Assembly: GCF_020745735.1 (NCBI RefSeq)
Contig: NC_083409.1
Coordinates: 15,223,873 to 15,287,872, forward strand
DNA length: 64,000 nucleotides
Reading direction: 5' to 3'
Source of the DNA: Hemiscyllium ocellatum
Taxonomy: Eukaryota
Made by a program: the position numbers and the translations under genes. A model generated the notes under the pieces. The model was not told the origin of the DNA. It did not search any database and was given only the letters and a program-made list of their open reading frames with translations. Every line of letters starts with the position of its first letter. Position 1 is the stretch's first letter. This document shows, piece by piece, positions 3,916 through 49,035 of the stretch.

Positions 3916-4059
3916 TCTTCTGGAGAATTTCCCCAAAACCCCGGAACACTGAACCCACTGGACTGTGAGCCCTGCTGTAGCTGTTTGTCATCAGAACTCT
4001 GCAAAGAGATAATCCAAGAGTGGAAAGAGTGTGCATCCATGTGGGAACTTCAGAATGTT

Positions 4060-4350
4060 TCCCCGGTCCTGGAATACCATGAGCACAGGAAGTGAGGTCA
4101 GTGACAGCAGTTGGAACTCCGGGTTTCGGAGCTTGAGCAGCAGCTGGTGTCAGTGAGGAACGTCCGTGAGGCTGAGAGCTCCGTGGAGAGCACGTTTCTA
4201 GATGTGGTCACTCTGCAGCTTCAGAATATGCAGGGAGAGAGGGAATGGGGAAGCAGCAGACAGTCCAAAAGTCCCCTGAGTGCATCCCACTCTCCAACCA
4301 GGATTCAGTTCAGAATCCTGATGAGAATGTTGAGAATAGGGGTCTTTAGT
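4060..4350 (+). mobile_element. CR1 ORF1 N-terminal fragment
   Basis: ELRVSELEQQLVSVR coiled-coil-like motif. Paralogous copy at 39780-40140 (-). Confidence 0.65.
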
Positions 4351-4465
4351 TTCTGAATATAGTTTGGGGTAGCAGCAGTGTAATGGGCAGAGAGGGGCCA
4401 GAGTTGCGAGAGTGTGTTCAGGTGAATTTTCAGGAGGCATCGGTGGCTTTGTGATGGTTCCGGTG

Positions 4466-4773
4466 GGGCAGCACGGTGGCTCAGTGGTTAGCACTGCAGC
4501 CTCACAGTACCAGGGTCCCAGGTTCAATTCCAGCCTTGGGTGAGTGGAGTTTGCACATTCTCCCTATGTCTGCGTGGGTTTCCTCCGAGTGCTCTGGTTT
4601 CCTCCCATGGTCCAAAGATGTGCAGGTCAGGTGAATTGTCCATGCTAAATTGTCCATAGTGTTAGATGATTTACAGAGAGGGAAATAGGTCCGGGTGGGT
4701 TACTCTTCGGAGGATCGGTGTGGACTTGTTGGGCCGAAGGACCTGTTTCCACACTGTAGAGAATCTAATCTAA
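4466..4773 (+). mobile_element. tRNA-derived V-SINE (HE1-like)
   Basis: A/B-box head gcacggtggctcagtggttagcactgc, V-domain gtggagtttgcacattctcc...gggtttcctcc, and a TAATC tail. Confidence 0.9.
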
Positions 4774-4779
4774 TTAGTG

Positions 4780-6855: not shown

Positions 6856-7526
6856 GACGCTGGAAAAGCTGAGACTTTTTACTCTGATGCGTAAGAGTCT
6901 GAGGAGTGACTTATAAACCTTATAGAGGTTTATAAAATCATGAGGGTCATAGAAAATGTGAATAAATCAGGAAGGAGGTGACGTTTTGTAGAAATGGCAA
7001 AAGAAATTCCCAAAGATCATTTCAGGGATGAGGAACATCAGTTATGAAGAGAGATTGGAGAATTTGGGACTGTCTTCTTTGGAGAAGGCTGAGAGGAGAT
7101 TTGTTCGAGGAATTAAAACCAGGAGGGGCCTGGACACAGTAAATAGGGAGAAAATGTTCCCAACTGAGAAATAATTGAGAGGGAGAGGCCATGGATTGAA
7201 AATAATTGGGAAAAGTAACAAAAGTGAGATAGGGAACAACATTTTCAGGTAGTGTTTGGTTAAGGTGTGGAATGCACTGCCTGAGAGTGTGGTGGAGGCA
7301 GCTTCAATTGAAACATTCCAAAAGGAATGAGACTATTATTCAAAAAGGAACAATGTGCAGGTGACAGGGAGAAGGCAGCAGAATGACACTCAGTGAATTG
7401 CTCATTCGGAGAGCCAGTACAGACAGGATGGACAGAATGGCCTCCTTGTGCACTGTAACAATTCTCTGATTGTGTGATTGAGCAGAGTTAAAGCTGGGGG
7501 AGGTGGGAGCTCGGTGTCTCACTGTG

Positions 7527-7553
7527 CTGCTGCTGCTGCTGCTGCTGCTGCTG
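7527..7553. repeat. (CTG)9 trinucleotide repeat in J-C intron of cluster 1
   Basis: Counted directly; the paralogue is (CAG)12 at 38398-38433. Confidence 0.95.
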
Positions 7554-7925
7554 AGGTCAGTGAGATCAGAGACTGGGACAGGGAGCCAGAGCTCACATCA
7601 AACTCTACCCGTGTCCGTCACACTGAGACTGGCAGGAGGCTACTCACTGATTTCACTCCATGCTGCAGGAATGGGACCACAGGCTGCAAATGGACAGAGC
7701 TCCTCCACACGGTGAGTAAAACTTACTGACTTATATCTTGCTTTTAAAGGGGGCAATGGAACTAAAGAAATACAGGTGGATACGCTGTTAGACACAGTGC
7801 TCTTCAATCAACCATTTCATTCACTGCAGCTCCCTACTAACACCGTCAACAATTCAGCATTTGTGTTTTAGAAAGTGTGTTTCAGTATTGACAGGGTTAC
7901 TAACATTGGATTGAGGTTTACTTAC

Positions 7926-7960
7926 TCAGTCTGAGCTTGGTTCCTTTACCGAACGTAAGC
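7926..7960 (-). CDS. IGKJ: Ig kappa J segment, cluster 1 (LTFGKGTKLRL)
   Basis: FGxG motif, flanked by the 23-RSS and a GTAAGT donor at 7925-7920. Identical in sequence to J2. Confidence 0.96.
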
Positions 7961-7999
7961 CACAGTGAGAGCTCCCAGTGCAGAGGCTGTACAAAAACC
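7961..7999 (-). other. 23-bp-spacer RSS of J1
   Basis: Plus strand: CACAGTG 7961-7967, a 23-nt spacer, then ACAAAAACC 7991-7999. Confidence 0.98.
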
Positions 8000-8433
8000 T
8001 CTGCTCTCTGCTTCCCCCCATCACTCTCAACCTCTCCCAGTCTCTCGTTCACTCTCACCCTCTTTCTGCCCCTCTCTGTCTCTCCCTCATTCATGTGTCT
8101 TTGTTTCTCTGTCTCTGTCTCTTTCTCTCTGGGTTGTGTGCAGCTGGGCTTGGGAGAGTTGTGAAATTCGATGTTAAATCTTGCAGCTGTTCTTCACACG
8201 CGGCCACGAAGTGTAAGAGTGAAACTTGAGGCCTTCAGTGAGCGGTGGACACCACAGGGACTGGAGTGTGTCGTGGACAGTGACAATCCCAGCATGGGGT
8301 AATTTGCTCAGTTTCATTTACATCTAACTGTCGGATATGTCAGTTCAGATGGTGGGACTGTATGTGTCCAATATTATTCATTTTATATAACTCTGGGATG
8401 TATCAGTGCAGGAGTTGGTGCTGTGTGTGTTGA

Positions 8434-8461
8434 GGTTTTTGTATGGCTCTGTATCACTGTG
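8434..8461 (-). other. 12-bp-spacer RSS of V1
   Basis: Minus strand: CACAGTG (8461-8455) + ATACAGAGCCAT (12 nt) + ACAAAAACC (8442-8434). Both motifs are consensus. Confidence 0.98.
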
Positions 8462-8993
8462 AAGGCCAGCTGCTATGCTGCATACAGTAATAGTCAGCGA
8501 CATCCTCATTCTGAACGTTGCTGATTTTCAGGGTAAAACTGGTCCCTGATCCACTGCCGGTGAATCGATCGGAGACTCCTGTGAATCGATTTGTTGCATA
8601 ATAGATCAGGAGAGAGGGCTTCTGACCTTCTCGTTGTTGGTACCAATCAAGGGAGCTGCTAATGCTTTGACTGGCCGTACAGGTGAGTGTTGCGGTCTGG
8701 CCCCGTCCCACTGACAGCACCGGAGGAGACTGGGTCATGGTGATGTCCCCACTGATACCTGAGGGATCAGAGAGAAACACAGTGAAGTCAGAACTGTCAC
8801 AGAAAGAGCCTGTCAAATGAGAGATTGTTGGAGACACTGAGCATTCCTCTGGTTTCAGCATTTTCCCTTCAATCACAAGTCAGTGGAATTGGAGTGAAAT
8901 GGAGAGCAGCTAAAGATTCAAGGTGGAAGGAGAGAGATTTGTACCTGCGACACAGAATGCCAGGGGCCAGATCAGCTGGATGTGTGAAATCAT
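8462..8993 (-). CDS. IGKV: Ig kappa-type (NS4-like) V gene, cluster 1: leader exon 8993-8945, 186-bp intron, V exon 8758-8462
   Basis: The leader [17 protein letters not shown] ends at a GT donor (8944-8943), and there is an AG acceptor at 8760-8759. The V exon reads [23 protein letters not shown]...WYQQ...[14 protein letters not shown], is open, carries the canonical Cys/Trp/Cys, and is followed by a perfect 12-RSS. Confidence 0.97.
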
Positions 8994-9053
8994 GGTGTGT
9001 GCTCCTGTCCCTGTGCCTGGTTCCTAATAAACTCTCCCTTCACTGGGCTCTGC

Positions 9054-9144
9054 TTTATAAAGCTGCAGCCTGTGAGAGTCTGACTGGGTGTTCCTCAGTA
9101 TGTAAATGGCATCAGGCAGGGAGGGCCATGTCAGTCCCTCACAC

Positions 9145-9150
<6 letters not shown>
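9054..9150 (-). promoter_or_regulatory. V1 promoter: TATA box, variant octamer, Ets/PU boxes
   Basis: TTTATAAA 9054-9061; ATTTACAT (plus-strand ATGTAAAT 9100-9107); GAGGAA 9096-9091; GAGGAAGTG 9150-9142. V2 has the same layout. Confidence 0.8.

Positions 9151-9176
<26 letters not shown>
9148..9176. repeat. (CT)n microsatellite abutting the V1 promoter
   Basis: Seen directly; a shorter (AG)n counterpart lies at ~36812-36824. Confidence 0.9.
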
Positions 9177-9178
<2 letters not shown>

Positions 9179-10099
9179 AGAATCATTGATGTGAACAGCA
9201 CTGAATGAGGCCATTTGGCCCATTGTATCTGTGCTGTTAAAGAAAGATCTGATGACACTAATCTCATCCTCCAGCTCTTGGTCCATTATCCTGGAGTCTG
9301 CAGCAACACAAGGGAATATCTAATCACTGCTCCACTGTCACGAGAGTTTGTGACTCAACCAGCCTTTCAGGCAGTGAGTTCCAGACTCCCACCACCCTCT
9401 GGTTGAAAACATTTCTCCTCAATTCTCCTCTCTCTCTCGAACTCGACTGGGCTTGGACTCACTCGAATTCAGATGGATGTATAAAATTCTAACAGGGCTG
9501 GGCAGGGACGAGGTTTCCCCTGGTTGGGAAGTCTGGAACCAGGGGACACAGTCTCAGGGGGATACAGGGTAGTCCATTTTTGGACTGAGATGAGGAAACA
9601 TTTCTTCACTCAGAGGGTGGTCAACCTGTGGAATTCTCTTCACTGAAGGCTGTGGAGGATAAGGAACTGAATATATTCAAGAAAAAGAGAGAGATAATTG
9701 TTTGCATTTTAACAGCATGAAGGGAATAGGGAGAAAGCACGAATATGGCTTTGAGATAGAGGATCAGCCATGATCATACTGAATGACAGAACAGGCTCAA
9801 AGGGCTGAATGGCCAACTCCTGCAGCAGTTTCTATGTGTCCATGTCTGTGTTACCTACAATCTCTGTCCCAGGTTACTGAGTCCTTGTCTCATGCAAAAA
9901 GTGTCTTCCTACCCACCCTATCACTGCTCCGAATATTCTTATCCCTCTCTATCAGGTCCCATCTCAGCCGTCACTGCTCCAAGGAAAACAACCCCAACCT
10001 TTCCAATCTTTTCTCAAAGCTCAGATTCAGTCAGCATCCTGGGAAATCTCCCCTGTACCCTCTCAGGTACAATCACATCCTTCCGAGAATGTGGTGACC

Positions 10100-10775
10100 A
10101 GGACATGTCCCTCTCTCTCTGTCTCACATCTGCCACATCTTTCTCTCCACCACTCTCTCCCCCACTGTTAATCGCTCATGTTTTCTCTCTCTCTTTCTCA
10201 CACTCTTGTCTCATAGTCACTCCCTCCAACTCACTGATGATTGCTCACTCCATTTCATAATCTCTGTTTCTCCATCTCTCTGTCTCTGTCACTCGCTCCC
10301 TCTCTCACTTCAATTAAAAGCCTCCAACTGTTATCTTTCCCTCTATATTCCTCCCTCTGTCTCTCTCCCTCCCTCTCTACATCCCAATCTACAGTCGCTC
10401 TCCCTCCCTCTCTATCATTCTGTACCTACCCATACTCATCTCTCTCTCTCTCTCTCACACACACACTCCACCCTACCCTCTCTGTCAATTCTCTTCATGC
10501 TTAGTCTCACACCCATCCTATCTCTCACTCTCTCTCTCTCTCACCTTATCTCTTTGTCTCTCTCCATCCCTATCAGTCACACTGTCTCACATCTTGTTTC
10601 TCTCTCTTTATCCCTCAACTTCACCATTACGACCTCCCTTTACCTCTCTTTTGGTTTCATCACATATCTCACACTGTCTCAGATGTTCCTCCCTCCCTCT
10701 CTCTCTCTCACTCAAACACAAACCCAGACACTCTCATTCTATCTCTCTCTCTGTCTCGCTTCTCTCTCTTTCTGA
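10100..10775. repeat. Long degenerate CT-rich polypyrimidine tract
   Basis: Low-complexity TC/CA sequence; the counterpart GA-rich tract is at ~35520-35860. Confidence 0.85.
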
Positions 10776-11539
10776 CAGTGTCCTGGGTGGTGACAGTTAA
10801 ATGCAGGATAAATCTCCCTCTGCTCTGCCCCACAAATGGATGTTACCCCTTGACCCCTGTCTTCTCCTGGAATAAAGCCCCATTTCCCACAATGACCAGG
10901 GTTTGGTCTGTCTCGGGAAGATGGACGATTCTTGTGAAATGAAGGGCAGTTCTGTGCTGTTCTGTTCTGTTGGCCTGTTCTCACTGGGGACTGGTTTGGA
11001 CACAAACCTCATTCCATGAAGGCCCAGCAGAGAGAGGAGATCCTCAGGCCATCAGTGTGAGCTGGAGGGACAGGACAGACTCTGACCTACTGACCCATCC
11101 TGTCCATTCACAACATGTTCCAATCCCTTCCCCTCTCCTTCCCCTTCCACAGTCAGTCTTTTCTGAAATGGAGTGGTCCCTTCCCTGTCTCACACCAAGG
11201 AGGAGATGGACAGATATTTAATGGGTAATGGGTTAAAGGATGATGGAGAGTGGGCAGGAATGTGGAGTTGAGTCTGAGATGGGATCAGCCATGATTGTAT
11301 TAAATGGTGGAGTGGGCTCTAGGGGCTGAATTGCCTGCTCCTGCTCCTAGTTCTTATGTTCCTCACCCCCTCCCCCATTCCTCTTACTGCAACTTTGTGA
11401 ACCATCTCGGACCGTTTTGAACATTGAAGGTGCTATGTGACTTCAAGATTTGTGTGGATTTAATGTGGGGACAAAATTGTGCAGGGGGCTGTGATAGCTC
11501 CTGCAGTTGGATATCCTACTGGCAACCTCCAGCCTTCCA

Positions 11540-12950
11540 CATTAACAATGGGGAAGTGGGAGAGGACAGAATGTACTGCAGGGTCCATGGAACTGTACCC
11601 CAGCAATGTGGTTGACCCTTAACTGCCCTCTGAAATGGCCGAGCAAAGCTCTCAGTTGTATCAATTATGACAATATTTCAACAAAGAAATGAGACCGGAC
11701 GGACCACAGGCATCGATCTAGACACAGAAAAGACAATGACAGAAACAGTCCTGTCTACCCTGCTCCATCCTCCTTACTGACATCTGGGAGCTAGGGCCAA
11801 ATTCAGGAGAGCTGTCTTACAGACTAGTCAAGCAACAGCCTGACACAGTCATACTCACAGAATCATACAGACAATGCCCCAGACACTACCATCACTGTCC
11901 CTGCATGTGTCCTGTCCCACCAGAAAGGCAGACCCAGTAGAGCTGATGACACAGTGGTCTACAGCCAGGAGGGAGTTACCCTGGGAAGTCTCAAAGTTGG
12001 CTCTGGACCCCGTGAAGACTCATGAAACTAAGTTAAACATGGGCGAGGAAACCTCCTGGTGATTACAAGATATCTTGCTCCCTCGGCTGATGAATCAGTC
12101 TCTCCTGGATGTTGAACAACATTTGGAGGAAGCACTGAGGGTGATGACAGCAGAGAGTGTACTCTGGGTGGGGGGGTTTCAATATCCACCACCGAGAGTG
12201 GCTCGGCAGCAGCATTACTGATCGAGCTGGTTGGTTCCTCATGGACGTAGCTGAGGACTGGCTCTGCAGCTGGTGGTGAAGGAACCAAAAATTTGGAAAA
12301 AGATGCTTGACCCCACCCTCACCAATCTTGTGGCTGTAGGTACATCTATCCTTGACAGTATTGGTAAGAGTGACCATCACACAGTCCTTGTAGAAACAAA
12401 GTTTGACCTTCACATTGAGAATCCCTCCATTGTGTTGTGTGGTACTATCACCGTACTGAATAGGACAGACTTTGGACAGATATTGCAACTAAAGTCAAGC
12501 TCATAAATGGGGATGATTGCCAAAGATTTCACAATGTTCAGCACCATTCTCAACTCCACAGATACTGAAGCAGTCCATGTTCAAATACAACAATATCTGG
12601 ACAATATCCAGGTTTCATCTCAGGAGCAGTCTTTCCTATCGGTGTCATGCAAATGCCAGCCAATGACCATCAGCAATAAGAGACAATCTAACCATCGTCC
12701 CTTGACAGTCAATGCTATTACCATCACTGAATCCCCACTATCAACATTCTTGAGATGCCATTGACCAGAAATACAACTGGACTCACCACAGAAGCATAGT
12801 GGTTACAAGAGCAGGTTAGAGGCTAGAAATACTGTATCGAGTAACTCACCTCCTGATTCCCCCAAAGCCTGTCAACCAAGTCAGGAGTGTGAGCAAATAC
12901 TCCCCACTTGCCTGGACAGGTGCAGCTCCAACAACATTCATAGACTGATA
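11540..12950 (+). mobile_element. Degenerate AP-endonuclease LINE of a family distinct from the dominant CR1
   Basis: Endonuclease-like remnant (LVKQQPDTVILTES). A same-strand copy lies at ~32040-32610, so these are independent insertions. Confidence 0.6.
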
Positions 12951-14042
12951 GTGTCACAGAGTCATATGGCAGAGAAACAAACCCTTAAGCCAAACTATTC
13001 CATGCTGACCAGGGTTTCTGAAGTGAACGAGTCTCATTTGCCTGCATTTGGCCCGTATCCCTCTAATCTATTCCTGTCTATGTCTTTCTCATCCAATCGA
13101 AAAGCTTGATACCATCCAGAGCCAAGCAACCTGCTTGATTGGCATCATATTCTCAAAGCATCCACTCTCACCATTCCCGATGCTCAGTAGCAGAAGTGTG
13201 TATTATCGATAAAATGCACTGCAGAAACTCACCAAAGGTCCTCAGATAGCACCTTCCAAACCCATGGACAAACATAGAAATCGCAGGAAAAGCTCAGTAG
13301 GACTGCCAGCATCTGGGGAGAGAAATCAGAGTTAATGTTTCGTGCTTGACCTGTGCATCTCTCTTCACAGATGATGCCAGACCTGCCGAGCTTTTCCAGC
13401 AATTTTGATCTTTATCTCGGATTCACAGCATCCGCATTTCTTTTGGTTTCCTTCCAAACCCACATCCACTTCTATTTCGGAGACCAGGAGCGGCAGACAC
13501 ATGGGAACACTATGAGCTGCAATTTCCCCTCGGAAAAGCTTAGCATCCTGACTTGGAAATATGTTGTTGATCCCTCAGCCTTGCTGGGTTAAAATACTAG
13601 CATTCCCTCCTGAAGAGCATTGTGAGTCAACTTACAGCTTGTGGACTACAGTGATTCAAGAAGGCAGCTTCCCACTGCCTTCTCCAGGGTAACTAGGGAC
13701 AGGGTAGAAAATGCTGGGACAGCTGGTGAAGCCCACTTCCCACGAGTGAATATGCAAAACCGAATGAAGTGTTCCTCAGGAGGGGAGAGGGAATGTTCAG
13801 GATCCTGAGCTCCATTTCCCAGCCCAGGCAGTTTGTCTCCCAATGAATGAATGAGATACCAATTTGGAACCCAGATTAAGGGCAGTCTTGCGCTGTCTAC
13901 CCAGGTCTACAAGAGACAATTAAGATCGAGCTGAAAAGGAAAGATTTGCTAGATTATGGGGAGAGAGAGGAGTAGTAGGACTGCTTGGGTCACTCACAGA
14001 CACAATGGGCTGAATGGCCTCCTCTTGTGCTGTCAGATTCCA

Positions 14043-14320
14043 GGGAGTGCAGATGGTTCACAGTTTTCTCCCGTCTCAGTAACAAAGGTCCAGCTGCTCT
14101 GAGCTCCTTCTTTCACTTCCTCTCTTGGTGAAGTTTCAACCTTGCGATCTGACAGTCTTTGCAGTTATTTTTTGCACTGGGGCTTTCTGCTGTGGTCAGA
14201 ATCTCTAATAATAAGTGTCCAATCAGTGACAATCACAGCAGCTAAGAGCAGTCAGGACTGAGAAGCCAGGCTCACTGGGAAACACATTGAAAAGATCAAA
14301 GCCATCCCCTTCAGCTCCCA
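14043..14320. promoter_or_regulatory. Candidate upstream B-cell enhancer, cluster 1 copy
   Basis: About 95% identical to 31578-31856. Contains an EICE TTTCACTTCC 14111-14120, E-box CAGCTG 14091-14096, kB-like GGGGCTTTCT 14179-14188, Runx TGTGGT 14191-14196 and a CCAAT box. Function is inferred. Confidence 0.55.
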
Positions 14321-14660
14321 GACTCTTTACTACCTTAGATTCATCTTTGAGGCTGATCTGATCTCCACATCCTCCACATCACAAAGATCAGACACTGCAA
14401 ATCTCAGCTATGTGATGGGGACTCCAAACATGACCATTCCAATGTTATCCTGGCCCACATCACAGCCACCACCTTCGGTAAACATCAACTCATCCCAAAC
14501 TCTGCTGCCAGTATCCGAACTCCCACCAAGTCCCATTCCCCCATTCCCTCCCCTTGTGCTCACTGACCAACATTGGCTCCTAGTCCAGCAACATCTTGAT
14601 TTGCAAGTTCTCATCCTTGTTCTCAAACCTCTCGCCTCCTTCCACCCTCCCCATCTCACC
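14320..14660 (+). mobile_element. L2-like LINE RT 3' remnant (paralogous copy 31200-31530, -)
   Basis: HWLLVQQHLDLQVLILVLKPL resembles the L2 HWLPxxxRIxFKILxLxxK motif. Confidence 0.6.
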
Positions 14661-15761
14661 CTCCAAACCACCTCACTCAGAGTGATCAACAATCTTGGAA
14701 ATATGGTTCTCTATTTCTTCATCCAAGTCATTGAGAAATATTGTGTGAAGCTGAGGTCCCAGCACAGATCCCTGGGGACACCACTATTCACATCTTGCTC
14801 ATTGGAGGACGTGCACATTATCCCTCCTCTCTGTCTCCTAGCTCTGGACCCAAGATAAATGCATTTCTCAAATTCCATCTGATTCCATGTCTCTTTTTAA
14901 ATGTCTTGTGGAATTCCCTATGGACAATAGCCATCAACATTCCCTTCTATCCCACATTAGTGAGCTCCTAACAAAGTGTAATCAGGTTAGTTAAAGATGT
15001 TTGAACCTTTGTAAATCCATGCTGACTCTCTCGGAACAGTTCATGTTAGTTAATCATTTGTTAGTCATCCTGTCTCTAAAAACAGATTCAATCAATTCCT
15101 GACAACAGACATTCAATGGAGATGTTCATTGTGAATGAGGTTAATATACAGCCAGCACTGACACGAGGGGCTGAACAGCCTCCTCCTGTGCTGGAGCCTT
15201 CTCTGTCTCCTTGACAGAAATATTTTACAGATTAAAAAATAAAGACCAACAGGAAATTTAAAAATACAAATTAAAACCGCCTCAAACAATTTCTATATAC
15301 AGGGCCAGGTGACGTGTAATTGCGATGGGGAAGCTGGTGGAGCCCATTGTAGCTCAGAGTGACCACATCTACAGCAAGTGTTGGTTGCTCAAGGCACTCC
15401 AGCTCAGAGTTGATGAGCTGGAATCTGAGCTTCAAACACTGTGACACATCAGGGAGGGGGAGAGTTACCTGGACACTGTGTTTGGGGAGACAGTTACATC
15501 TTGTAGGTTAAATACTTCAAATTATGGCCAGTGGTCAGGGACAGGAGGGTGTGACCAAAAGTGAACAGGTCGATGCAGCCTGGATTTAGCCTTTCAGGTG
15601 CCTCAGCTCCTTGTCCAACAGGAATGAGGTACTTGCTCCCTGTGTCAATGAGGAAAAGGATTGCTTTTGGAAACTAATGTGGATACACTGCAGAATGGTC
15701 AAGCGTGGTTTGGAGCATTTTGGCGATAGTGACCATAACTCTATCAGGTTCAAAGTCATTA

Positions 15762-31577: not shown

Positions 31578-31856
31578 TGGGAGCTGAAGGGGAATGGCTT
31601 TGATCTTCCCAATGTGTTTCCCAGTGAGCCTGGCTCCTCAGTCCTGACTGCTCTTAGCTGCTGTGATTGTCACTGATTGGACACTTATTATTAGAGATTC
31701 TGACCACAGCAGAAAGCCCCAGTGTAAAAAATAACTGCAAAGACTGTCAGATCGCAAGGTTGAAACTTCACCAAAAGAGGAAGTGAAATAAAGAGCTCGG
31801 AGCAGCTGGATGTTTGTTACTGAGACGGGAGAAAACTGTGAACTGTCTGCACTCCC
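31578..31856. promoter_or_regulatory. Candidate upstream B-cell enhancer, cluster 2 copy
   Basis: GGAAGTGAAA 31779-31788, CAGCTG 31803-31808, AGAAAGCCCC 31711-31720 and ACCACA 31703-31708, about 5.1 kb upstream of the V2 ATG. Confidence 0.55.
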
Positions 31857-36923: not shown

Positions 36924-36983
36924 GCAGAGCCCAGTGAAGGGAGAGTTTATCAGGAACCAGGCACAGGGACAGGAGCACACACC

Positions 36984-37517
36984 ATGATTTCACACATCCA
37001 GCTGATCTGGCCCCTGGCATTCTGTGTCGCAGGTACAAATCTCTCTCCTTCCGCCTTGAATCTTTAGTTGCTCTCCATTTCACTCCAATTCCACTGACTT
37101 GTGATTGAAGGGAAAATGCTGAAACCAGAGGAATGCTCAGTGTCTCCAACAATCTCTCATTTGACCGGCTCTTTCTGTGACAGTTCTGACTTCACTGTGT
37201 TTCTCTCTGATCCCTCAGGTATCAGTGGGGACATCATCATGACTCAGTCTCCCCCGGTGCTGTCAGTGGGACTGGGCCAGACCGCAACACTCACCTGTAC
37301 GGCCAGTCAATCTGTTAGCAATGAGCTTTCCTGGTACCAGCAGCGAGAAGGTCAGAAACCCTCTCTCCTGATCTATGCTGCAACAAATCGATTCACAGGA
37401 GTCTCCGATCGATTCACCGGCAGTGGATCAGGGACCAGTTTCACCCTGAAAATCAGCAACGTTCAGAATGAGGATGTCGCTGACTATTACTGTATGCAGG
37501 ATTACAGCTACCCTCGA
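36984..37517 (+). CDS. IGKV: Ig kappa-type (NS4-like) V gene, cluster 2: leader exon 36984-37032, 186-bp intron, V exon 37219-37517
   Basis: Leader identical to V1, GT-AG intron, and an open V exon [38 protein letters not shown]...[11 protein letters not shown] followed by a perfect 12-RSS. Confidence 0.97.
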
Positions 37518-37545
37518 CACAGTGACACAGAGCCATACAAAAACC
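37518..37545 (+). other. 12-bp-spacer RSS of V2
   Basis: CACAGTG 37518-37524 + ACACAGAGCCAT + ACAAAAACC 37537-37545. Confidence 0.98.
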
Positions 37546-37953
37546 TCAAAGCACACAGAATCACCTCCTGTACTGACACATCCACGGTTATATAAAATGC
37601 ATAATAATGGACACACAGTCCCACCGCCTGAACTGTCATATCCCACAGTTAGATCTAAATGAAACTGATCAAATTACCCCATGCTGGGATTGTCACTGCC
37701 CACGACACACTCCAGTCCCTGTGGTGTCTCAACGCTCACTGAAGGCCTCAAGTTTCCCCCTTCCACTGCATGGCCACATGTGAAGAACAGCTGCAAGATT
37801 TAACAACAAAAAATGAAGTTCACAACCCAGAGGCAGAGACAGAAAGACACATGAATGAGGGAGAGACTGATAGGGGCAAAAAGAGGGTGAGAGTGACCGA
37901 CAGACTGGGAAATAGGGAGAGGGTGAGAGTGACAGAGGGAAGCAGAGAGCTGA

Positions 37954-37992
37954 GGTTTTTGTACAGCCTCTACACTGGGAGCTCTCACTGTG
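37954..37992 (+). other. 23-bp-spacer RSS of J2
   Basis: GGTTTTTGT 37954-37962, a 23-nt spacer, then CACTGTG 37986-37992. Confidence 0.98.
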
Positions 37993-38027
37993 GCTTACGT
38001 TCGGTAAAGGAACCAAGCTCAGACTGA
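37993..38027 (+). CDS. IGKJ: Ig kappa J segment, cluster 2 (LTFGKGTKLRL)
   Basis: G CTT ACG TTC GGT AAA GGA ACC AAG CTC AGA CTG A, followed by a GTAAGT donor at 38028. Confidence 0.96.
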
Positions 38028-38397
38028 GTAAGTAAACCTCAATCCTCCGTTATTAACCCTTTCAATACTGAAACTTTCTAAATCACAAATGCTGAATTGA
38101 TGCAGGTGTTAGTGGGGAGCTGCAGTGAATGAAATGGTTGAATGAGGAGCACTGTGTCTAACAGGGTGTCCAGCTGTATTTCTGTCGTCCTATTGCCCTG
38201 CTTAAGCAGCAAGATATAAGTCAGTAAGTTTTACTCACCGTGTGGAGGAGCTCTGTCCATTTGCAGCCTGTGGTCCCATTCCTGCAGCATGGAGTGAAAT
38301 CAGTGAGTAGCCTCCTGCCAGTCTCAGTGTGACGGACACGGGGCAGAGTTTGATGTGAGCTCTGGCTCCCTGTCCCAGTCTCTGATCTCACTGACCT

Positions 38398-38433
<36 letters not shown>
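38398..38433. repeat. (CAG)12 trinucleotide repeat in J-C intron of cluster 2
   Basis: Counted directly. Confidence 0.95.
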
Positions 38434-38435
<2 letters not shown>

Positions 38436-38489
38436 CAGTGAGACACCGAGCTCCCACCTCCCCCAGCTTTAACTCTGCTCAATCACACA

Positions 38490-41400
38490 ATCACAGAATC
38501 GTTTCAGTGCACAAGGAGGCCATTCAACTCATCCTGTCTGGACCGGCTCTCTGAATGAGCAATTCACTGAGTGTCATTCTGCTGCCTTCTCCCTGTCACC
38601 CTGCACATTGTTCCTTTTTGAATAACAGTCTCATTCCCTTCGGAATGTTTTAATTGAAGCTGCCTCCACCACACTCTCAGGCAGTGCATTCCACACCTTA
38701 ACCACCCACTGGCTGAAAATGTTTTTCCCCCATCTCACTTTCGCCTCTTTTACCAATTATTTTCAATCCATGGCCTCTCCCTCTCAATTCTTTCTCAGGT
38801 GGGAACATTTTCTCCTGGTTTACTCTGTTCAGACCCCTCCTGATTTTGAATTTCTCGATCAAATCTCCTCTCTGCCTTCTCTTCTCTGAGGAAAACAGTC
38901 CCAATGTCTTCAGTCTATCTTCATAACTCACGTTCCTCATCCTCGATGGGTCAGATAGCCCACTCCTGCTCCTATTTCTAATGTTCTTATTATCTTATCT
39001 TCCTATGTGAGAGACACACATCAGATTTCCACTTAACACTCTGTGGCTGTACCTTCCCAGTCTTATTCCCAACACTCCGTGCAGTCCCATCCTTACACAG
39101 TTACCCTGATTTAGAATTTATTACTCTCTCTCCCTCACTCTGAAACTGGGTAAGAAGTTCTATTCCTTATTCTGGTGCTATCTATCTCTCCCAGGATTCT
39201 GTGCACCTCTGTGTTCCTCTCTGGTATTCCCTCCTGGATCCCACAGGCCAAGATAGTTTAAACCCTCTCCAACAGCACGAGTAAATCACCCCAAAGGAAC
39301 TCAGTCCCAGGTCTGTTCAGGAGCAACCCGTCTGGTCTGTACATGTCCATCTCCCCCCAAAGCCAGTCCCAATGTTAAAATAATCGAAATACCTTCCTCC
39401 TGGACTGTCTTTTCAGTTCCACAGTCACCTGTGCTATCCTCCTCTTTCTATTCTCAGTTGTGTGGGGCACTGGGGGTAATCTTGGAAATTCCTACTTTTG
39501 AGCTCCTGCTGCTAATTCCCTCTGGAACTCCCTAAATTCTGACTGGAGGACCACATCCCTTTTCTCCCGCTGTCACTGGGACCGATGTGGACCATGACTG
39601 CTGCCTGTTCCCCCTCTCCCCTCAGGGTGCTCTGCAGCAGCTCAGTGACATCCTTCACCTTGGCACCAGGGAGATAACACACCATCCTGGATTCCCATCT
39701 GCAGCTGCAGAAACACCTATCGATGCCCTCACTCTCGAATCTCCTCTCACTCTCACTCTTCCAGTCTTCCTTGTGCCCCCCTATACAGCTGAGCCCCCCA
39801 TGGTGCCATGGACTTGGCTCTGGCTGCACGCCCCAGATGAACCATCATTCTGATCAGGATTCTGAACTGAATCCTGGTTGGAGAGTGAGATACACTCATG
39901 GGATTCCTGTACTAGCTGCCTGGTCCTTTTGGACTGTCTGCTGCTCCCCCATTCCCTCTCTCCCTGCATACTCTGAAGCTGCAGAGTGATCACATCTAGA
40001 AACGTGCTCTCTACGGAGCTCTCAGCCTCACGGACGCTCCTCACTGACACCAGCTGCTGCTCAAGCTCCGAAACCCGGAGTTCCAACTGCTGTCACTGAC
40101 CACACTTCCTGTGCTCATGGTATTCCAGGAAGCAGGACAAGCAGTTTCCTCATGCAACCTGATGCAACTCTCACCACTCCCTGATTATCTTTTGTCAAAG
40201 TTCTTTTGAGAAACAGCAACAGCAGGGCTCACAAACCAGTACTTTCAATGTCCATAGAATCACAGAATTCCTACAGTATGGAAACAGGCCATTTGGTCCA
40301 TCAAGTCCACGCTGACCCTCCGAACAATAACCCACCCAGACCCATTCCCCTACCTTTTTAACCTACATTTACTCCTGACTAATGTACCTAACCTGCACTA
40401 TGGGCAATTTAGCATGGCCAATTCACCGAACCTGCACAGCTTTGGACTGTGGGAGGAAACCAGAGCACCTGGAGGAAACCCACGCAGACACAGGGAGAAC
40501 ATGCAAACTCCACACAGACAGACGCCCGAGGCTAGAATCAAACCTGGGTCCATAGCGCTGTGAGGTAGCAGGGCTAACCACTAAGTGACCGTACTTCCAG
40601 TTTTCCAGGGTTTCAAGGAACCTCGACATAAACCCAAAATACTTAAGATATAGGAGCAGAATTGGGCCAGTCAGAAGAGAGTCTGCTCTGCCATTTGACC
40701 TTGTGTGATGTGTTTCTCAACCCCATTCTCCTTTTAACATTTGATCTCCTTACTGACCAAGAACCTATCTGTCTCTGTTTTAAATATTCTCAACATCTTG
40801 GCATCCATAGACCTCTGTGACAATGAGTTCCACAGATTCACCACCCTGTGGCTGAAGAAATGCCTCCTTATCTCAGTTCTGACGGATCATTCTTCACTCT
40901 GAGGCTTTGCCTTCGGGCCCGAGATTCTTCTATTCGTGGAAACACCTTCTCCATGTTCTCCAGGCCTCTCAATATTCTGTAGTTTCAATAAGATTCCCCC
41001 ATCATCTTTCTAAACTCAATTGCATACAGATCCAGAATCCTCAACCGCTCTTTATATGACACCCCCTTCATTCCCAGGATCATTCTTATTCTTTCTCACT
41101 TTTTCCTCTGGACCCTCTCCAATGACAGCACATCCTTCCTTAATAAGGAGACCAAAATTCCAAATGTGGTCTGATTACAGACTTATACAAACTCAGCAGT
41201 ACACCTCTGACGTTAAAGTTAATGCTAACACTGTAACTGCCTTTCAAACAGCCAATGGTGAACCTGCACGTTAACCTTCAGAGAAACCTGAGCAAGGACT
41301 CCCAATTCTCTTCGTGCTTCAGATTTCTGAAATCTTTCCTCACTCAGAAAACAGTCTGTGTCTCTATTCTTCCCACCAAAGTATCTAGCCTCACAAGTCC

Positions 41401-42300
41401 CCGCATTGTACTCCACCTGCCACTTCTTTGCACATTCTCTCAGCCTGACCAAGTCCTTCTGCAATCTCCCCCACTTCCTCAACTCCACTTGTCCTTTCAC
41501 CAATTTTTGTGTCATCTATAAACATATGAACAATATCTTCAGTTCCTTATCCAGATTGTTAATGGATAATATGAATAGTTGTGGTCCCAACACAGATCCC
41601 TGCAGATCGCCACAAAGCACCACCAGCCATCCAGAAAAAAATCCCTTTGTCCCTACTCTCGCCTTTGTGCCGGCCAGCCAATCCTCTACACTTCGCAGTG
41701 CCTTGCTCCTGACAGCATGGGCTCTGATTTGACTTAGCAGTCTCCTTTATTGTACCCTGTCAAAGGCCTGGTGGAAATCCAAATGGATCACATCCACTGG
41801 CTCTCCTTTGTCTAACTCACTTGTTACCTCCTCAAAGATTTCTAACAGATTTATCAGGCATGCCTCCCTTTGATGAAGCTGTGCTGACTCAGCCCAATTT
41901 TACCAGGCTGCAATTTTACCAGACTTAAGGGTGAGATTCCAAATACCTGCAATCTCACCCTTAGGTAGACCTCTAAAATCTTACCAATGACCGAGGTCAG
42001 GCTAACCAGCTTATAATGTCCCATCTCTGCCTCCCTCCTTTCTTAAACAGGGATGTTACATTCACTATTTTCCAGTCTTCTGGGACCACTCCTGACTCCA
42101 GTGATTTCTGAAAGATCACAGCCAATGGCCCTACAATTACCTTAGCTATCTCCATCAGAACTCTGGAGTGTAGTCCATCGGGTCTGAATGATTTATCCAC
42201 CTTCAGACCTTTCAGCTGCCTCAACCCCTCCACCTTAGTGATGCCCTTTCCACTCACTTCTGCTCCCAACTCTCTTGAAGGTCAGGTGTACTGGCTGATA
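38490..42300 (-). mobile_element. Stack of antisense CR1 fragments (3' end, ORF1, RT) in J-C intron 2
   Basis: MRNVSYEDRLKTLGLFS; CYLPGAKVKDV; LKVDKSFRPDGLHSRVL. Confidence 0.8.
40255..40592 (-). mobile_element. V-SINE
   Basis: Reverse-complement SINE head and V-domain. Confidence 0.88.
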
Positions 42301-42304
42301 TTCA

Positions 42305-43998
42305 AGCATCATGGTTAGCCACAGGTGAGGTGCCAGAAGACTGGAGGATAGCGAAGACTGTGCCATTGTTCAAAAAGGGCTGAAAAACAAAAGCCTGGGA
42401 ATTATAAGCTTAACATTTGTGGTGGGTAGTTGTTTGATAAGATAAGATACACATGCATTTGGAAAGAGTGGATTTGATTAGGAGTTGTCAGCATGACTTT
42501 GTGAGTGGGAGAATATGCCTCACAAATCTGTTAAGTTACTTTGATGAATTGACCAGGAAGGTTATGAGGGCAGGATGGTAGACGTGGTCTATATGGGTTT
42601 CAGTGAGGCCTTTGATAAGGTTCCACATGGCAGGCTGTTATGGAAGGTTAGATTGCATGGAATCCAAGGTGACCTGGCAAATTGAATACACGATTGGCTT
42701 GATGGTAGAAAGCACAGGGTAATAGGGGAAGTATCCTTATTGTACTGGAGGCCTGTGACTAGTGGAGTGCCTCAGTGGTCAGTGCTGAGCCCATTGCTGT
42801 TTGTTATCTATAACAATGTTTTGGATGAGAATGTACAAGGCATGGTTAGTGAGTTTGCTGATGACACTCAAATAATTTATGGGCGGCACGGTGGCACAGT
42901 GGTTAGCACTGCTGCCTCACAGCGCCTGTAGACCCGGTTCAATTCCCGACTCAGGCGACTGACTGTGTGGAGTTTGCACGTTCCCCGTGTCTGCGTGGGT
43001 TTCCACCGGGTGCTCCGGTTTCCTCCACAATCCAAAGATGTGCGGGTCAGGTGAATTGGCCAAGCTAAATTGCCCGTAGTGTTAGGTAAGGGGTAAATGT
43101 AGGGGTATGTGGGTTGCGCTTCGGCGGGTCGGTGTGGACTTGTTGGGCCGAAGGGCCTGTTTCCACACTGTAAGTCTAATCTAAGCAGCATCGTGGACAG
43201 TGCGGACAGTTATCAGAAATTGCAGCAGGACCTTGCTCAGCTGGGGAAGTGGGCCGAGAAATGACAAATAGAGTTTAATACAGATAAATGTGAGGTCTTG
43301 TATTTTGGAAATTTAAAGCAAGGTAGGAGTTTCATGGTGAATGATAGGGACCTTAAGGAATATAGTGGAACAGAGGGTCCTTAGAATTCAGATAAGCAGT
43401 TCTCTGAAAATGGAGTCACAGTAAATAGAGCAGAGAAGAGAGCTTCATCAGTCAGGGCATTGACTACAGATGTTGGGAAGTTATGTTGCAGTTATACAGG
43501 ACACTGGTGAAGCCACACTTGGAATATTGTGTTCAGTTTTGGTCACCTTGTTCCAGGAAGGATGTTATTAAACTGGAAAGAGTGCAGAAGAAATTTGCCA
43601 GGATTCAATCGTTTGGGTTAAAGGGAGAGTACTTTTTTCTTTAGAGTGTAGGAGACTGAGGGAGGACCTCATAAGATTATGAGAGGCATGGATAGGGTGA
43701 ATTCACTCGTTCTTTTCCCCAAGGTTTGTGAATATGAGCTAGAGCGCATCAGTTTAAGGTTAGAGGGGAAAGAAAAAAAGGGAACCTGAGGGGCAACCTT
43801 TTTACACATAGGATTGTTCGCATATGGAATGAGCTGCCAGTGGAAGTGGTTGAGGTGGGTACATTAATAACATTTAAAAGGCATTTGGACAAATACAGCA
43901 AAGGAAAGGATTCAGAAGGATATGGGCCAAGTGTAGGATTAGCGTAAATGGACCAGTTTGGTCCAAATGGCCTGTCTCCATGCTGTAGGACTCTGTGA
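42305..43998 (+). mobile_element. CR1 RT/3' fragment nested in the antisense CR1, specific to cluster 2
   Basis: WRPVTSGVPQWSVLSPLLF, SEFADDT motifs and a CR1 tail. Absent at the equivalent position of cluster 1 (~2970). Confidence 0.85.
42881..43184 (+). mobile_element. Young V-SINE nested in CR1 RT
   Basis: CpG-rich and nearly identical to 56014-56303. Confidence 0.92.
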
Positions 43999-44001
43999 CA
44001 T

Positions 44002-44616
44002 TGTTATGGACCAGGCCAGACCCTTCAAAACATTTTAAGAATGCAGCCCAGACCTTACCTTTTCGAATTGTGTTCAGCAAATGTAACCTGGATATTCCAG
44101 GAATGATACAACTGGCCAAACCACTCAGCTTGAAGGAAAAGAGTATTTATTTACAATCAAAAGAAAACAGAATTTAGAATAACTTAACTATTTGAAAACC
44201 CAACTATTTGAAAAAATGTAACTTGACAAAGAGTTGTTCCAATTTGCTGTAATAGCCTTGGCAAAAAGGTAAATATAAACACAGGGGTTCTTACAGGAGA
44301 GGAATTTCAGAAAGTGAGTCCACTGGAAAATGTTGAATTGGGGAACCTTTCTCACCAGCAGCTTTCTTTATCCAGGAGCTTCCAACCGACTGTTTGTCAA
44401 AAACAGCAAACTGGAAGAACTGGCCATTCTCCTTTTATTGGACAAGTGTTTAATATAAAACCTAAAAGCCTTTTCCCTGACTGTTGCCTTAGGCAGTATC
44501 TGTTAGCCATGAGCAAAGTCCCTAACCCAGACAAATTGGAACCTCTGCCTTTACAACCCCTCTTGAAAAAAAATCCAAGGACAACTCAAACTTGTGAAAT
44601 GAGCAGCATTGCCACA
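44002..44616. mobile_element. Possible solo LTR
   Basis: About 615 bp, bounded by TGT...ACA, with no ORF and AATAAA-like signals on the minus strand. No TSD was found. Confidence 0.35.
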
Positions 44617-45900
44617 CTACTGTGAAAGCTGATTTAAGGCACCGATGCAGTTTTTCCACCATTTCTTTGTTCCCCATTACTACTTCTGCCTTTTCCAGTG
44701 GTACAATTTCTATTATTGACTCCCTCTTGCCTTTCATATATCTAAAGAAAACCTCTTGCAATATTCTTTTATGTTACTAACTCGCTGACCATTATATTTT
44801 ATTTACACACCCACCCTTACTTTTTTTTAGTTACTCTCTGCTGTTTATTAAAGGCTTCCCAATCCTCCGGCTTCCCAATAATCTTCACCACATTGCCTGT
44901 TTTTTCTTTTGCTTTTATGCTGACCCTGACTTCCCTCATCAGCCATGGTTGCCTTGGCCTCCACTCAGTACCTTTCTTCTTCCTTGGGTTAACTTCCTGC
45001 TCTGCCTCCCAAATTACCCCCAGAAACTCCTGCCATTGCTGCTCCATTCTCTCTTATGCTCAGCTTCCTTTCTTACCAACTCTGGCCAGCTCCTCCCTCA
45101 TGTCTTTGTAGTTACCTTAAGTTAATTGCATTACCGGTACAACTGACTCCAGATTCCCTGTCACAAACTGCAGGGTGAATTCTGTCATATTACGGTCAAT
45201 ACCCCCAAGGGATTCCTTCACCCTAAGTTCCCTAATCAGGTCTGCTTCAGTACACATCACCCAATCCAGAATTGCCTGTTCCATAGTGATCTCTACCACA
45301 AGCTGCTCTAAAAACCATGTTGTAAACATTCCATTAATTCCTACCCATGAGATCCCCAAACAATTTAATTTTCCAGTCTCCCTGCATATTGAAGTCCCTC
45401 ATGACTATTGTAGCAGGGCCTTCTCTATCTCCTGATTTATTTTCTTCCTCATATCCTGACTGCTGCTGGGGGGTCCTGTGCTAAGTTCTCATCATGCTCT
45501 TTCTCCCTTGCAACTCCTCAACTCTACCCACACAGATTAAATGCATTCCAACTCTAAATCCCTTCTTGTGATTGATCTCATTTCATTTCTTACCAAGAAG
45601 GTAACCCCACCCCCATCTGCCCATCAGCATGTCCTGTCAATCGGATGTGCATCCTTGAGTATTTCATTCCCAGCCCTCAACCCCTTACAGCCAGGTCTCT
45701 GTGATACTCAAAACATCGTACCTGCCAATTCCAATCTGTGTTACAAGCTCATTTACCTCATTTCGGATACGCCCTGCATTCAGGTACAACACCCTCAGTC
45801 CTGCACTGACTGTCCTCCTTTTCATAGTTGTCCCCTTATGCACTGTGCCTAAAATTAATTTTCTGACCCTTTCCATAATCTATGTCCTATTAATTGTTTT
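44617..45900 (-). mobile_element. Antisense CR1 ORF2 endonuclease half in J-C intron 2
   Basis: AGLRVLYLNAGRIRNEVNEL...YDVLSITETWL; homologous to 1440-2950. Confidence 0.85.
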
Positions 45901-48215
45901 GGGAACTTTACTAACCTCTCCTGAACCCTGCGTCACTTTAATGATTTTAAAGTCCTTGGGAACCTCAATTTGTGGCATCACTCTGTCTACCTTATTCCGA
46001 ATGCGCTATCATAAAAAGATTTTAGGTTATTTCTACTGTCTGTATTGCCTTGTTACAATATGACATTCACAAATTCTGATCCTTCCTTTTATTTTCTGGT
46101 AACAATCAAACCCATCACTAACCACGACTCCCACCTTCGCCTGTGCCTTTCATTTTCTCACGTTTTGTGCAACTGAACCCATTTGCTTTCTCTTTGGGTT
46201 GACTTCAGGTCAATATTTATCCCTGAAATATCACTGAACATGCTTCATAATCTCATTTATTTTTGTGCGATATTGCTGTGTGCAAATTGTGTTTTCTGCA
46301 TTACAACACTAACCAGTGTCCAGACAAGTCCCTGACTCTCTGTAAATGCTTTGGGAGAGCCTGACATACAAGTCTCTCTTTTGATGCACTGGGAACCTTT
46401 CAGATATCAGAGATGCCATTCCGTGGCTCTCCTAGACAGACAGCAGGACGGTGTCTCCTGGTGTCCTGGTCAATATTGATTCCCTAATTAGCATCACTAA
46501 AAATCTGATCCTCGCCTCATTGTCACCCAGCTCTCTGGGATCTTGCTGAGCACAGTCTGATGGAAAGAGCCACTGCAACATCCTTAGGTGGAGGCAGGTG
46601 CAACATAAATGCAAGTCTTTCTTTGAGGTTGGAGTCTCCAGAACATGACCCTTGCCCGTTGGATGCACGCTTCCATCTTCCAGGGAACATGGGATCATTA
46701 AGAGCAGTGTCACTGTCTGATCCCAGGACACTGAGACTCTTTGCACCCTCACATTTGACCTTACCCCAGTGCTGAGCTGGAAGACTTGAAACAAAATCTG
46801 GAACCTTCTACATGGACACCCAACGTGACTCCTTCCTGAAGTGTGCTGATCCAACTCTGCTCCAATGTTGTTGGATAAAGTTCTCCCGAGCTGTGAGTGA
46901 TCGGAGGTTTGTTAAAGAGGTGTCGAACTCCACCCCACATACCAGCTCTTGCTCCATAGCTCTGGAGGCTTTGGTGTTTCAAGTGAATATCCAGGTGTTT
47001 TTTTCAATGTGATGAGGGTTTCTGCCGCTCTCACCCTTTCAGCTAGTGAGGTCCTGACCCCACCAGCCACTGGGTGAAACAATTACTCCTCAACTCCCCT
47101 CGAACCCTGCCCCCAATTCATTTCCATCTCTCTCCATGGTTATTGCCCTCTGTGCTGATGGAAATCAGTTCTTCCTACCCACTCTATCCAGACCCCTCAT
47201 CATTTTACACACCATCGATCAACTCTCCCCTCAGCCTCCTGTGTTCCAAAGAAACCAGTCCCAGCCAAACCAATCATTCCTCAAAGCTAATACTCCTCAT
47301 TCCTGACAAAATCCTCCACTGTCCCCATCTCTCGGGGGATCACATCCTTCCTGCAATATGGTGACCAGAACTGCACACAGTTCTCTCATTGTGCTCTAAC
47401 GGGGCTTCATTTGAGGTCAGAAGTCACACGACACCAAGTTATAGTCCAACAGACTAATTTCAAATCACAAGCTTTCAGAGCTCTGTTCCTTCAGCACTGA
47501 AGTCACTTCACCTGAAGATGGAGCAGCGTCTCACAAGCTCGTGATTTTAAATAAACCTGTTGGACTGGAACCTGGTGTCATGTGACTCCTGAACATGTCC
47601 ACCCCAGTTGGACACCAGAGCCTCCACATCATATCGATAGTTTCACATCTTTGCCGAGACTCTCTCTTTGGGAGTGTCACTCTTACTCTTTTGGGAAAAG
47701 ATTCTGAATGATCTCTGTGCCTGTCTCATCCTTGGAGACCTCCCACTGCCCTGTCACTGATCTCCCATCAAGGCGATGGTTCCAGTGCTCTTTTATCAAA
47801 TTACCACACAGTTTGGTAAAATGGATTGTTCCCAAATCAAAACTTTTACACTTGCTCCACGGTTCTCCATTTCCATCCCTATTCTCAATCTCACTGAGTT
47901 CCGATCACTGTCACTAAAATGCTCCCACATTGATAGCCCTTCCAGCTGCCCACATTCATTCCTCAAATGGTGGTCACGGACTGTCCCTTATCTTTCTGCT
48001 GCGTCACCATCACCTTCTCAGAGACAGTTAGGGATGGGCAGCGACTGGCTCTGCCAGTGCCATACACGTCCTAAAAAGCAATGTTTAAAATGCCAGTGCT
48101 TTGTCAGGTCTGCTAGGTACTGGGTACAAATGTTCAAACGTTTTAGCAGTTAATGTTCAGAGAGTCTATGTACCTTCAAAAGGCAGGGATTAAAATTGTT
48201 TCTCTTGTCTTTCAG

Positions 48216-48544
48216 TCCGTGACAACTCTCAGCCCAAGCTGACCCTGCTGCCCCCCTCCCCGGAGCAGGTCAATGCCAAGGGCACTGCCACCCTGGTATG
48301 CCTTGCCAATCACTTCTATCCCGATGAGCTGGAGGTGCAGTGGAAGAAGGACGGTGCAGTCATTTCGGACGGGGTTCAGACCAGCAACTACCTGCGAGCT
48401 TCGGACAGCACCTACAGTGTCAGCAGCCTGCTGACCCTCTCTGGGTCTGACTGGGAGTCCAACGCTCACTTCTCCTGTGCCCTCACCCATGTGACACTCC
48501 CCTCTCCCCTCAGCAAGAGCATCAGGAGATCAGAATGTGTGTAG
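48216..48544 (+). CDS. IGKC: Ig kappa constant-region exon, cluster 2
   Basis: Pyrimidine tract plus AG acceptor at 48214-48215, in phase with J2. Reads RDNSQPKLTLLPPSPEQVNAKGTATLVCLANHFYPDELEVQWKKDG...YSVSSLLTL...FSCALTHVTLPSPLSKSIRRSECV-stop: a C1-set Ig domain with a terminal Cys for the H-L bond. Confidence 0.96.
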
Positions 48545-49035
48545 AGTGTTTGAGACAGTCCACAGAGGAGACACAACTTTAAATAGAACAGTGCTGAGCT
48601 GGCAGGTCAAAGGTCATTTTCAGCACTGAATTTCAACTCTCTTCCTTCTCAGGACTGGCTTGGAGATACTTCTGAGCTTCAGGGGTTAAGGCTGGTTGTT
48701 GGGATAGTGTAGAGAAAACTTTACTCTTTATCTAGTCCCATGCATTCCCTGACCTGGATGTGTTTGATGGGGACAGTGCTAAAGACTGTCAGCTGTGCAA
48801 AAACAATGTGAACCTCAAAAGTCTCTGTTTCAGTAAAACAGACCTCCTTTCTGCTCAGCCGCCAGTTCCAATTTAAGGTTTTGTCACTGTTTAAAGGGAC
48901 AGGATTCTCATGTTATTGAGAAATTCTCCACAAGTGTTTTCCTCAAGCTCCATTGTGGCTGTGAATTTGAGCAGCTTCCTCTGTCTGGGCTGTTAATTGC
49001 TGACTGTTTTCTGTCAATGTCAATCTGGAAAAGGG

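Follow-up and report, generated by a model that had tools for sequence, protein, structure and literature searches.

The immunoglobulin (Ig) lambda enhancers of chicken, human and mouse are defined by E-box, NF-kB, MEF2 and PU.1-IRF4 sites, all of which are required for hypermutation targeting by the enhancer (PMC3972084). The enhancers cIgLambdaE, hIgLambdaE and mouse E-lambda 2-4 / 3-1 double as hypermutation-targeting DIVAC elements (PMC3972084). The order in the chicken enhancer is E-box, NF-kB, MEF2, CCAATCAG, then AAGGAAACGAAAC (PMC3972084 Figure S2B), and in mammals the lambda enhancers have one more E-box, located some 50 bp 3' of the PU.1 site (PMC3972084). In the literature searched, no description of a cis-regulatory element or enhancer of a shark Ig cluster was found. 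Teleost Ig enhancers (Atlantic cod IgL, catfish E-mu-3') belong to cluster-type or compact loci and contain E-box and octamer or Ets-type sites. They are situated in or downstream of the C region, unlike the shark element described here, which lies upstream of V. This element, referred to below as the block, is non-coding, is associated with kappa clusters and is kept above its flanks in three species.

The kappa clusters and the two window copies of the block

The window, that is, the whole 64-kb stretch of shark DNA that was analysed, contains two Ig kappa-type V-J clusters placed head to head. The V exon matches an annotated protein at 99% identity, and the window probably comes from Hemiscyllium ocellatum, the epaulette shark, or from a species very close to it. 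Self-comparison of the window gives a single colinear inverted duplication, 744-14844 against 46364-31007. The genes, the block copies and their flanks are as follows.

7933..8993 (-), kappa cluster A gene, putative target of block copy A: leader ATG 8993; leader intron 8756-8941; V exon to 8462; 12-spacer recombination signal sequence (RSS) at 8461; J 7933-7953 with 23-spacer RSS; C exon outside the window
36984..48545 (+), kappa cluster B gene, putative target of block copy B: ATG 36984; V exon to about 37517; J 38000-38020; C exon ~48215-48545
14043..14320 (-), conserved block, copy A, in V orientation, 5050 bp upstream of the cluster A start codon
31578..31856 (+), conserved block, copy B, 5128 bp upstream of the cluster B start codon
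14321..14844 (-), distal flank, an old repeat remnant, 74-81% identical in every copy pair and taken as the local background
13764..14042 (-), V-proximal flank, the 3' tail of an old repeat, abutting the block

The leader-V splice joint of cluster A (8755/8942) is visible in RNA contigs, in which the leader intron has been removed. The V promoter, on the minus strand, has an octamer variant, ATTTACAT, at 9100-9107, some 110 bp before the ATG, and at ~9053-9061, some 65 bp before it, a TATA-like TTTATAAAG. A second inverted duplication, 77-88% identical, is situated 3' of the cluster B C exon (52366-52873 against 63995-63484, and 58503-59866 against 63489-61996), and is probably the tail of a third, tail-to-tail cluster past the window end.

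When copy A was aligned by MAFFT with the reverse complement of 31578-31856, 13 of the 279 columns differed, one of them by an indel, and the central 120 columns contained two differences only (columns 82 and 132). The hand count made in the sequence-only reading, 13 of about 279 with two in the central 120, was thus reproduced. Sliding-window identity between the copies is 98-100% in the core (14124-14273) and 84-92% at the block ends. The shared remnant adjoining the block (14327-14844) is about 80% identical between A and B, which bears out the earlier statement that this neighbour is far less alike than the block. Counted as differences, the block has 13/279 (4.7%) and the distal flank 104/531 (19.6%; Fisher p = 6e-10).

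On the V-proximal side, A-B homology ends at 14021, and the flank is interrupted at 31878 in copy B; this flank is 84-86% identical in one locus each of Chiloscyllium punctatum (L002) and Stegostoma tigrinum (L006), described below. As the earlier reading also had it, the DNA between block and V region differs between the arms: these stretches of 2.8-3.3 kb (A 11195-14020; B 31879-35138) are unrelated, one 37-bp piece excepted. Directly distal to the block, about 44 bp (31534-31577) are present in copy B, L002 and L006 and missing from copy A (14317-14320), which indicates that copy A carries a deletion at the block edge. The ends of the block form an inverted match of 5-6 bp, GGGAG...CTCCC.

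Copies in other sharks and the pattern of conservation

Loci from two other orectolobiform sharks were reached through kappa proteins found by homology. Copies were sought in about 210 kb of shark DNA (the window and loci L001-L007), and six were found, the four outside the window being these.

L002, C. punctatum, block 3323-3598, 94.6% identical to A, 6.4 kb upstream of a kappa V, in V orientation
L001a, C. punctatum, L001 5006-5276, about 80% identical to A, 4.7 kb upstream of a VJ gene
L001b, C. punctatum, L001 1297-1026, inverted, about 77% identical to A
L006, S. tigrinum, block 7349-7615, about 90% identical to A (91-92% over ungapped columns)

Wherever the V gene belonging to a copy is inside the DNA examined (five clusters), the block is situated upstream of that kappa V and in its orientation; two further contigs are too short upstream to bear on this. 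The remaining copy, L001b, is presumably that of an adjoining head-to-head cluster with its V beyond the locus. The S. tigrinum block is situated 2.4 kb upstream of V and is followed directly by the repeat tail seen at copy A. Across clusters the distance from block to V ranges from 2.4 to 6.4 kb; the spacing of 5.0-5.1 kb to the ATG given in the sequence-only reading therefore describes both window copies correctly (5050 and 5128 bp) and does not extend to the other clusters, where it is 2.4, 4.7 and 6.4 kb.

The gene downstream of L001a is a germline-joined VJ of a diverged C. punctatum kappa subfamily, and it is intact: V and J are fused in the germline at L001:10142-10620 (BEZZ01000502.1) with the frame open throughout. 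In another C. punctatum locus, L005, no block was found in the assembled 14 kb upstream of V, a stretch that includes an 884-N gap. The V of L005 (14288-14799, BEZZ01001156.1) is a pseudogene: it carries two 1-bp insertions, and a 22-bp deletion has taken out the conserved Trp; the C exon of L005 (95%) is intact. Among the kappa clusters examined, the one without a block in its assembled upstream DNA is this one with the V pseudogene. In the lambda-like cluster of Callorhinchus milii (L007), there is no BLAST-detectable counterpart of the block. A grouping of Ets-IRF, Runx and MEF2 sites 2.2 kb upstream of V in L007 was considered and set aside, as it is not kept in the neighbouring paralogous cluster; this result says nothing on kappa-type clusters. 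Block 31-mers are present in sequencing runs from four organisms.

Among A, B and L002, the block is 95-96% identical; these three are 91-92% identical to the S. tigrinum copy and 77-80% identical to both diverged C. punctatum copies. B and L002, although from different species, are as close (96.0%) as the window neighbours A-B (95.7%), and the adjacent head-to-head pair L001a-L001b (69.3%) is the most divergent of all. Between A and L002, differences amount to 5.4% in the block against 21.3% in the distal and 14.2% in the proximal flank; between A and S. tigrinum, they are 10.3% in the block against 15.6% in the flank (p = 0.04). These block-flank comparisons use clusters non-orthologous to A or B, so that the between-species neutral rate is uncalibrated. 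For the diverged C. punctatum subfamily, differences over the whole block are not significantly fewer than in the flank (19.7% against 21.3%, p = 0.37). L001a nevertheless has 40 consecutive identical nt across the MEF2-Runx-kB segment (permutation p = 0.0025) and keeps the Ets-IRF site and the E-box, and L001b looks like a case of neutral decay.

The locus contains other islands of identity. The leader, leader intron and promoter (8706-9105 / 36872-37271) are 98% identical between the arms, and the 186-bp leader intron is almost unchanged in the L005 pseudogene cluster (14270-14560), where differences are more frequent in the framework regions of the V exon. Some 2 kb before the start codon, 10994-11143 / 35155-35304 are 97% identical; the piece around this island (10742-11360) has 83-93% identity in C. 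punctatum loci and a V-exon-like DNA depth. These islands, that of the V leader intron included, suggest that the locus may be shaped by something besides selection on factor sites, for example gene conversion.

A further island is situated in the J-C intron, 230-430 bp downstream of J (7526-7724, minus strand; 38226-38425, plus strand), and comprises 200 bp that are 99% identical between the arms, 97% in L002, 97% in L005, which has it intact, 92% in L006 and 82.5% in L001. Its sequence includes an octamer-like ATTTGCAG, and a Runx TGTGGT beside a (CAG)n run. With its classical position in the intron, the J-C island makes a second candidate regulatory element, at least as good a candidate as the block. 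The sequence-only reading placed the enhancer upstream of V rather than in the J-C intron; with an intronic island at least as well conserved as the block, the words "rather than" are unsupported.

Motif content and likeness to known enhancers

In V orientation, the block reads CCAAT (as CTGATTGG), MEF2, Runx, kB-like, a conserved spacer of about 60 bp, GGAAGTGAAA and CAGCTG. The boxes are located in the window as follows.

14111..14120 (-), Ets-IRF composite site GGAAGTGAAA; copy B 31779-31788; exact in five of six copies
14091..14096, E-box CAGCTG; copy B 31803-31808; invariant in all six copies
14179..14196 (+), kB-like GGGGCTTTCT then Runx TGTGGT; copy B 31703-31720; each in five of six copies
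14205..14225 (+), MEF2 consensus CTAATAATAA then CCAATCA; copy B 31674-31694
14053..14082 (-), further conserved box (TTACTGAGA ... GAGAAAA.TGTGAA), one of the best-preserved parts of the alignment of all six copies

All the motifs named in the sequence-only reading, GGAAGTGAAA, CAGCTG, GGGGCTTTCT, TGTGGT and CCAAT, were found again in both window copies. The composite GGAAGTGAAA is exact in A, B, L002, L006 and L001a, L001b having GGAAATGAAG in its place, and the GGAA Ets core is present in all six copies. The E-box follows 14 bp downstream of the composite in V orientation. The kB-like GGGGCTTTCT matches GGGRNWYYCC at nine of ten positions, the final C missing in every copy, and the S. tigrinum variant, GGGACATTCT, likewise matches at 9/10. 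The MEF2 site, which was absent from the earlier motif list, is found in the window as CTAATAATAA at 14205-14214 and 31685-31694. It is perfect (YTAWWWWTAR) in three of the six copies (A, B and L002), has one flank mismatch in L001a and has a broken core in L006 and L001b. CCAAT is kept in four of six copies and has been lost in the diverged subfamily. L001b is without the Runx and kB-like sites, and part of its Ets-IRF site is gone.

Within the 64-kb window, Ets-IRF, CAGCTG and TGTGGT occur together within 280 bp solely at the two blocks. In 200 Markov-simulated windows, such clusters numbered 0.35 on average, or 0.005 with MEF2; the test is post hoc, the motifs having been chosen before it was run. 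The entire block is conserved, including boxes that match no named motif: AACTGCAAA, TTCACCA and the stretch 14053-14082 are conserved equally well, so that the motif names are a reasonable reading of the block rather than a demonstrated footprint. Columns of named motifs showed no significant extra conservation over other block columns in the three diverged copies (p = 0.44, 0.08 and 0.28), and motif-level footprinting was accordingly dropped.

The likeness to Ig-lambda enhancers is in composition. They too are compact (200-300 bp), and the sites that they combine, namely E-box CAGCTG, NF-kB type, MEF2 and a PU.1-IRF4 composite written GGAANNGAAA, have exact or approximate counterparts in the block. 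The shark block shares with the mammalian lambda enhancers an E-box shortly downstream of the composite site, and with those of chicken and turkey a CCAATCAG beside MEF2. Arrangement and position differ, however. The shark CCAAT-MEF2-Runx-kB series before the composite is the mirror of the chicken kB-MEF2-CCAAT sub-module; the shark kB site is imperfect and MEF2 is not in all copies; and the Ig-lambda enhancers are situated downstream of C, whereas the block lies 2.4-6.4 kb upstream of V. Sequence homology of the block to Ig-lambda enhancers could not be demonstrated. On paper, then, the block fits the Ig-lambda enhancer family by its motif set, and not by homology or position. The mammalian Ig-kappa 3' enhancer (E3') is also alike in having a PU.1-IRF4 composite and an E-box in a kappa-type locus (PMC3972084 Fig. 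S5 legend). E3' differs in being situated downstream of C-kappa in one large translocon locus, while in the shark a small element lies upstream of V in each V-J-C cluster. On the best reading of these comparisons, the closest type would be an Ig-lambda enhancer, present once per cluster.

Alternative explanations and the proposed role of the block

Contigs from four public sequencing runs were aligned to 8460-14460 and their depths summed over contigs. An exon or a structured non-coding RNA gene might be suspected, as some block 31-mers occur in RNA-labelled runs of two organisms. However, both window copies have stops in all six frames, the block has no Rfam match at E <= 1, and its folding energies are those of shuffled sequences (z-scores -0.59 and +0.90, no signal on either strand). 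In the RNA-labelled run X17, the V exon reaches a summed depth of about 1.2 million and the block 7-23; the block values in this run and in X20 (14) are the same as in silent DNA nearby, some 1e-5 of the V-exon depth. The RNA contigs across the block are genome-colinear, and no splice joint was found at it. A stable transcript is ruled out by this background-level depth, and an exon or RNA gene is scarcely credible.

The same contigs bear on the idea that the block is a fragment of a low-copy interspersed repeat, carried along with cluster duplication and looking conserved because its family is young. The block is flanked by two repeat remnants, its ends form the inverted match, and in summed DNA depth it exceeds the V exon by a factor of 2-3: the core has 13,353 and 33,732 in the two DNA runs (contig sums, not exact copy numbers), the V exon about 5,600-6,100 and 10,600-11,000. 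Repeats within the same stretch, on the other hand, reach 100,000-540,000. A block depth near that of the V exon and 10-40 times below that of real repeats nearby points to a multi-copy element on the scale of kappa V genes. All six copies occupy the same position in the cluster unit, five of them upstream of a kappa V and the inverted sixth presumably that of a neighbouring cluster, and none is scattered in the ~210 kb. No target-site duplication or long terminal repeats were found at the block ends. The flanks that the window copies have in common indicate that the block was duplicated along with the cluster and not inserted, and identities from 69% to 96% indicate that the block family is not young. 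Depth and, in the ~210 kb examined, cluster position together rule out a high-copy repeat, which the sequence-only reading had named as a danger to its proposal, and a low-copy repeat fragment is very improbable. A joint in the DNA contigs, 11361->14026, might be read as a sign that 2.66 kb between V and block are absent from other clusters; this reading was rejected, since 11300-11361 and 13990-14040 are 3' tails of one repeat family and the joint is most likely a cross-alignment of a repeat tail next to the block in other copies.

More weight is due to a functionless identity island produced by gene conversion or concerted evolution among kappa clusters, with repeat or indel breakpoints bounding the tracts. 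The locus is a mosaic in which islands of 98% (8706-9105), 99% (J-C intron) and 97% (10994-11143) stand in a background of 80-87%. At one edge of the block homology is lost, at the other there is a 44-bp indel, the block of the diverged subfamily is no better kept than its flank, and the motif columns have no special conservation. Against this, conversion does not operate between species, yet the block is 95% identical in C. punctatum and about 90-92% in S. tigrinum, with flanks at 79-86%; conversion explains such similarity only if it took place before the species split. The window copies share no more derived states with each other than B shares with the C. punctatum copy. Neighbouring copies have not been homogenised, as the divergence between L001a and L001b makes clear, and B is as close to L002 as to A, which is evidence against ongoing conversion. 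The graded identity, higher in the core than at the ends, is a poor fit to a uniform conversion tract, and the co-occurrence of five B-cell motifs would be a coincidence. We regard this explanation, the foremost of the alternatives, as unlikely. It is distinctly unlikely, in turn, that the block is a functional cis-element of another kind: a promoter giving rise to unstable germline RNA (upstream or antisense), a silencer, or an element that keeps the two head-to-head clusters apart as a boundary. It is located at the outer edge of the duplicated cluster unit, toward the partner cluster, and is crossed by low-depth RNA contigs in two RNA runs; CCAAT/NF-Y and kB-like sites occur in promoters too. 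However, the RNA at the block is at silent-DNA level, colinear and unspliced, no CTCF-like motif was seen in the block by eye, and the S. tigrinum block is present without a head-to-head partner in the 7.3 kb upstream.

On balance, and with moderate confidence, the block is read as a cis-regulatory module of each kappa V-J-C cluster, most likely a B-lineage enhancer. Here we infer factor binding, enhancer activity and target gene from the DNA sequence. PU.1 or Spi-B with IRF4/8 may occupy the composite site GGAAGTGAAA, and E2A the CAGCTG box 14 bp from it. The ultra-conserved core lies some 60 bp upstream of the composite, and Runx, a Rel/NF-kB-type factor and possibly MEF2 and NF-Y may bind there. 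In B cells, the bound factors would jointly open the cluster and drive the V promoter, which is situated 2-6 kb further downstream. The block may also, as the analogy of bird and mammal Ig enhancers suggests, mark the cluster for AID-driven hypermutation. The earlier proposal of an own B-cell enhancer for each cluster is thus kept in part: a conserved, V-oriented block with the motif set is present in three species, while exclusion of the intron, a fixed 5-kb spacing and motif-specific conservation fall away.

A bolder extension, which we consider doubtful, is that each kappa cluster might be an autonomous mini-locus, whose upstream enhancer, written in the amniote Ig-lambda code of PU.1-IRF/E2A/Runx/Rel/MEF2, would both select, from among hundreds of clusters, the one that a B cell activates and target AID to it. 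If true, the light-chain enhancer code, and perhaps hypermutation targeting, would be older than the split between cartilaginous and bony vertebrates.

The block bears on the activation of just a few Ig clusters, out of many, in a shark B cell and on the targeting of hypermutation to them, and a small, sequence-defined candidate at each kappa cluster makes both questions directly testable. Should the block prove inactive, it would still be a clear case of mosaic conservation in a multigene family. If the factor code is confirmed, the light-chain enhancer code would date to the base of the jawed vertebrates.
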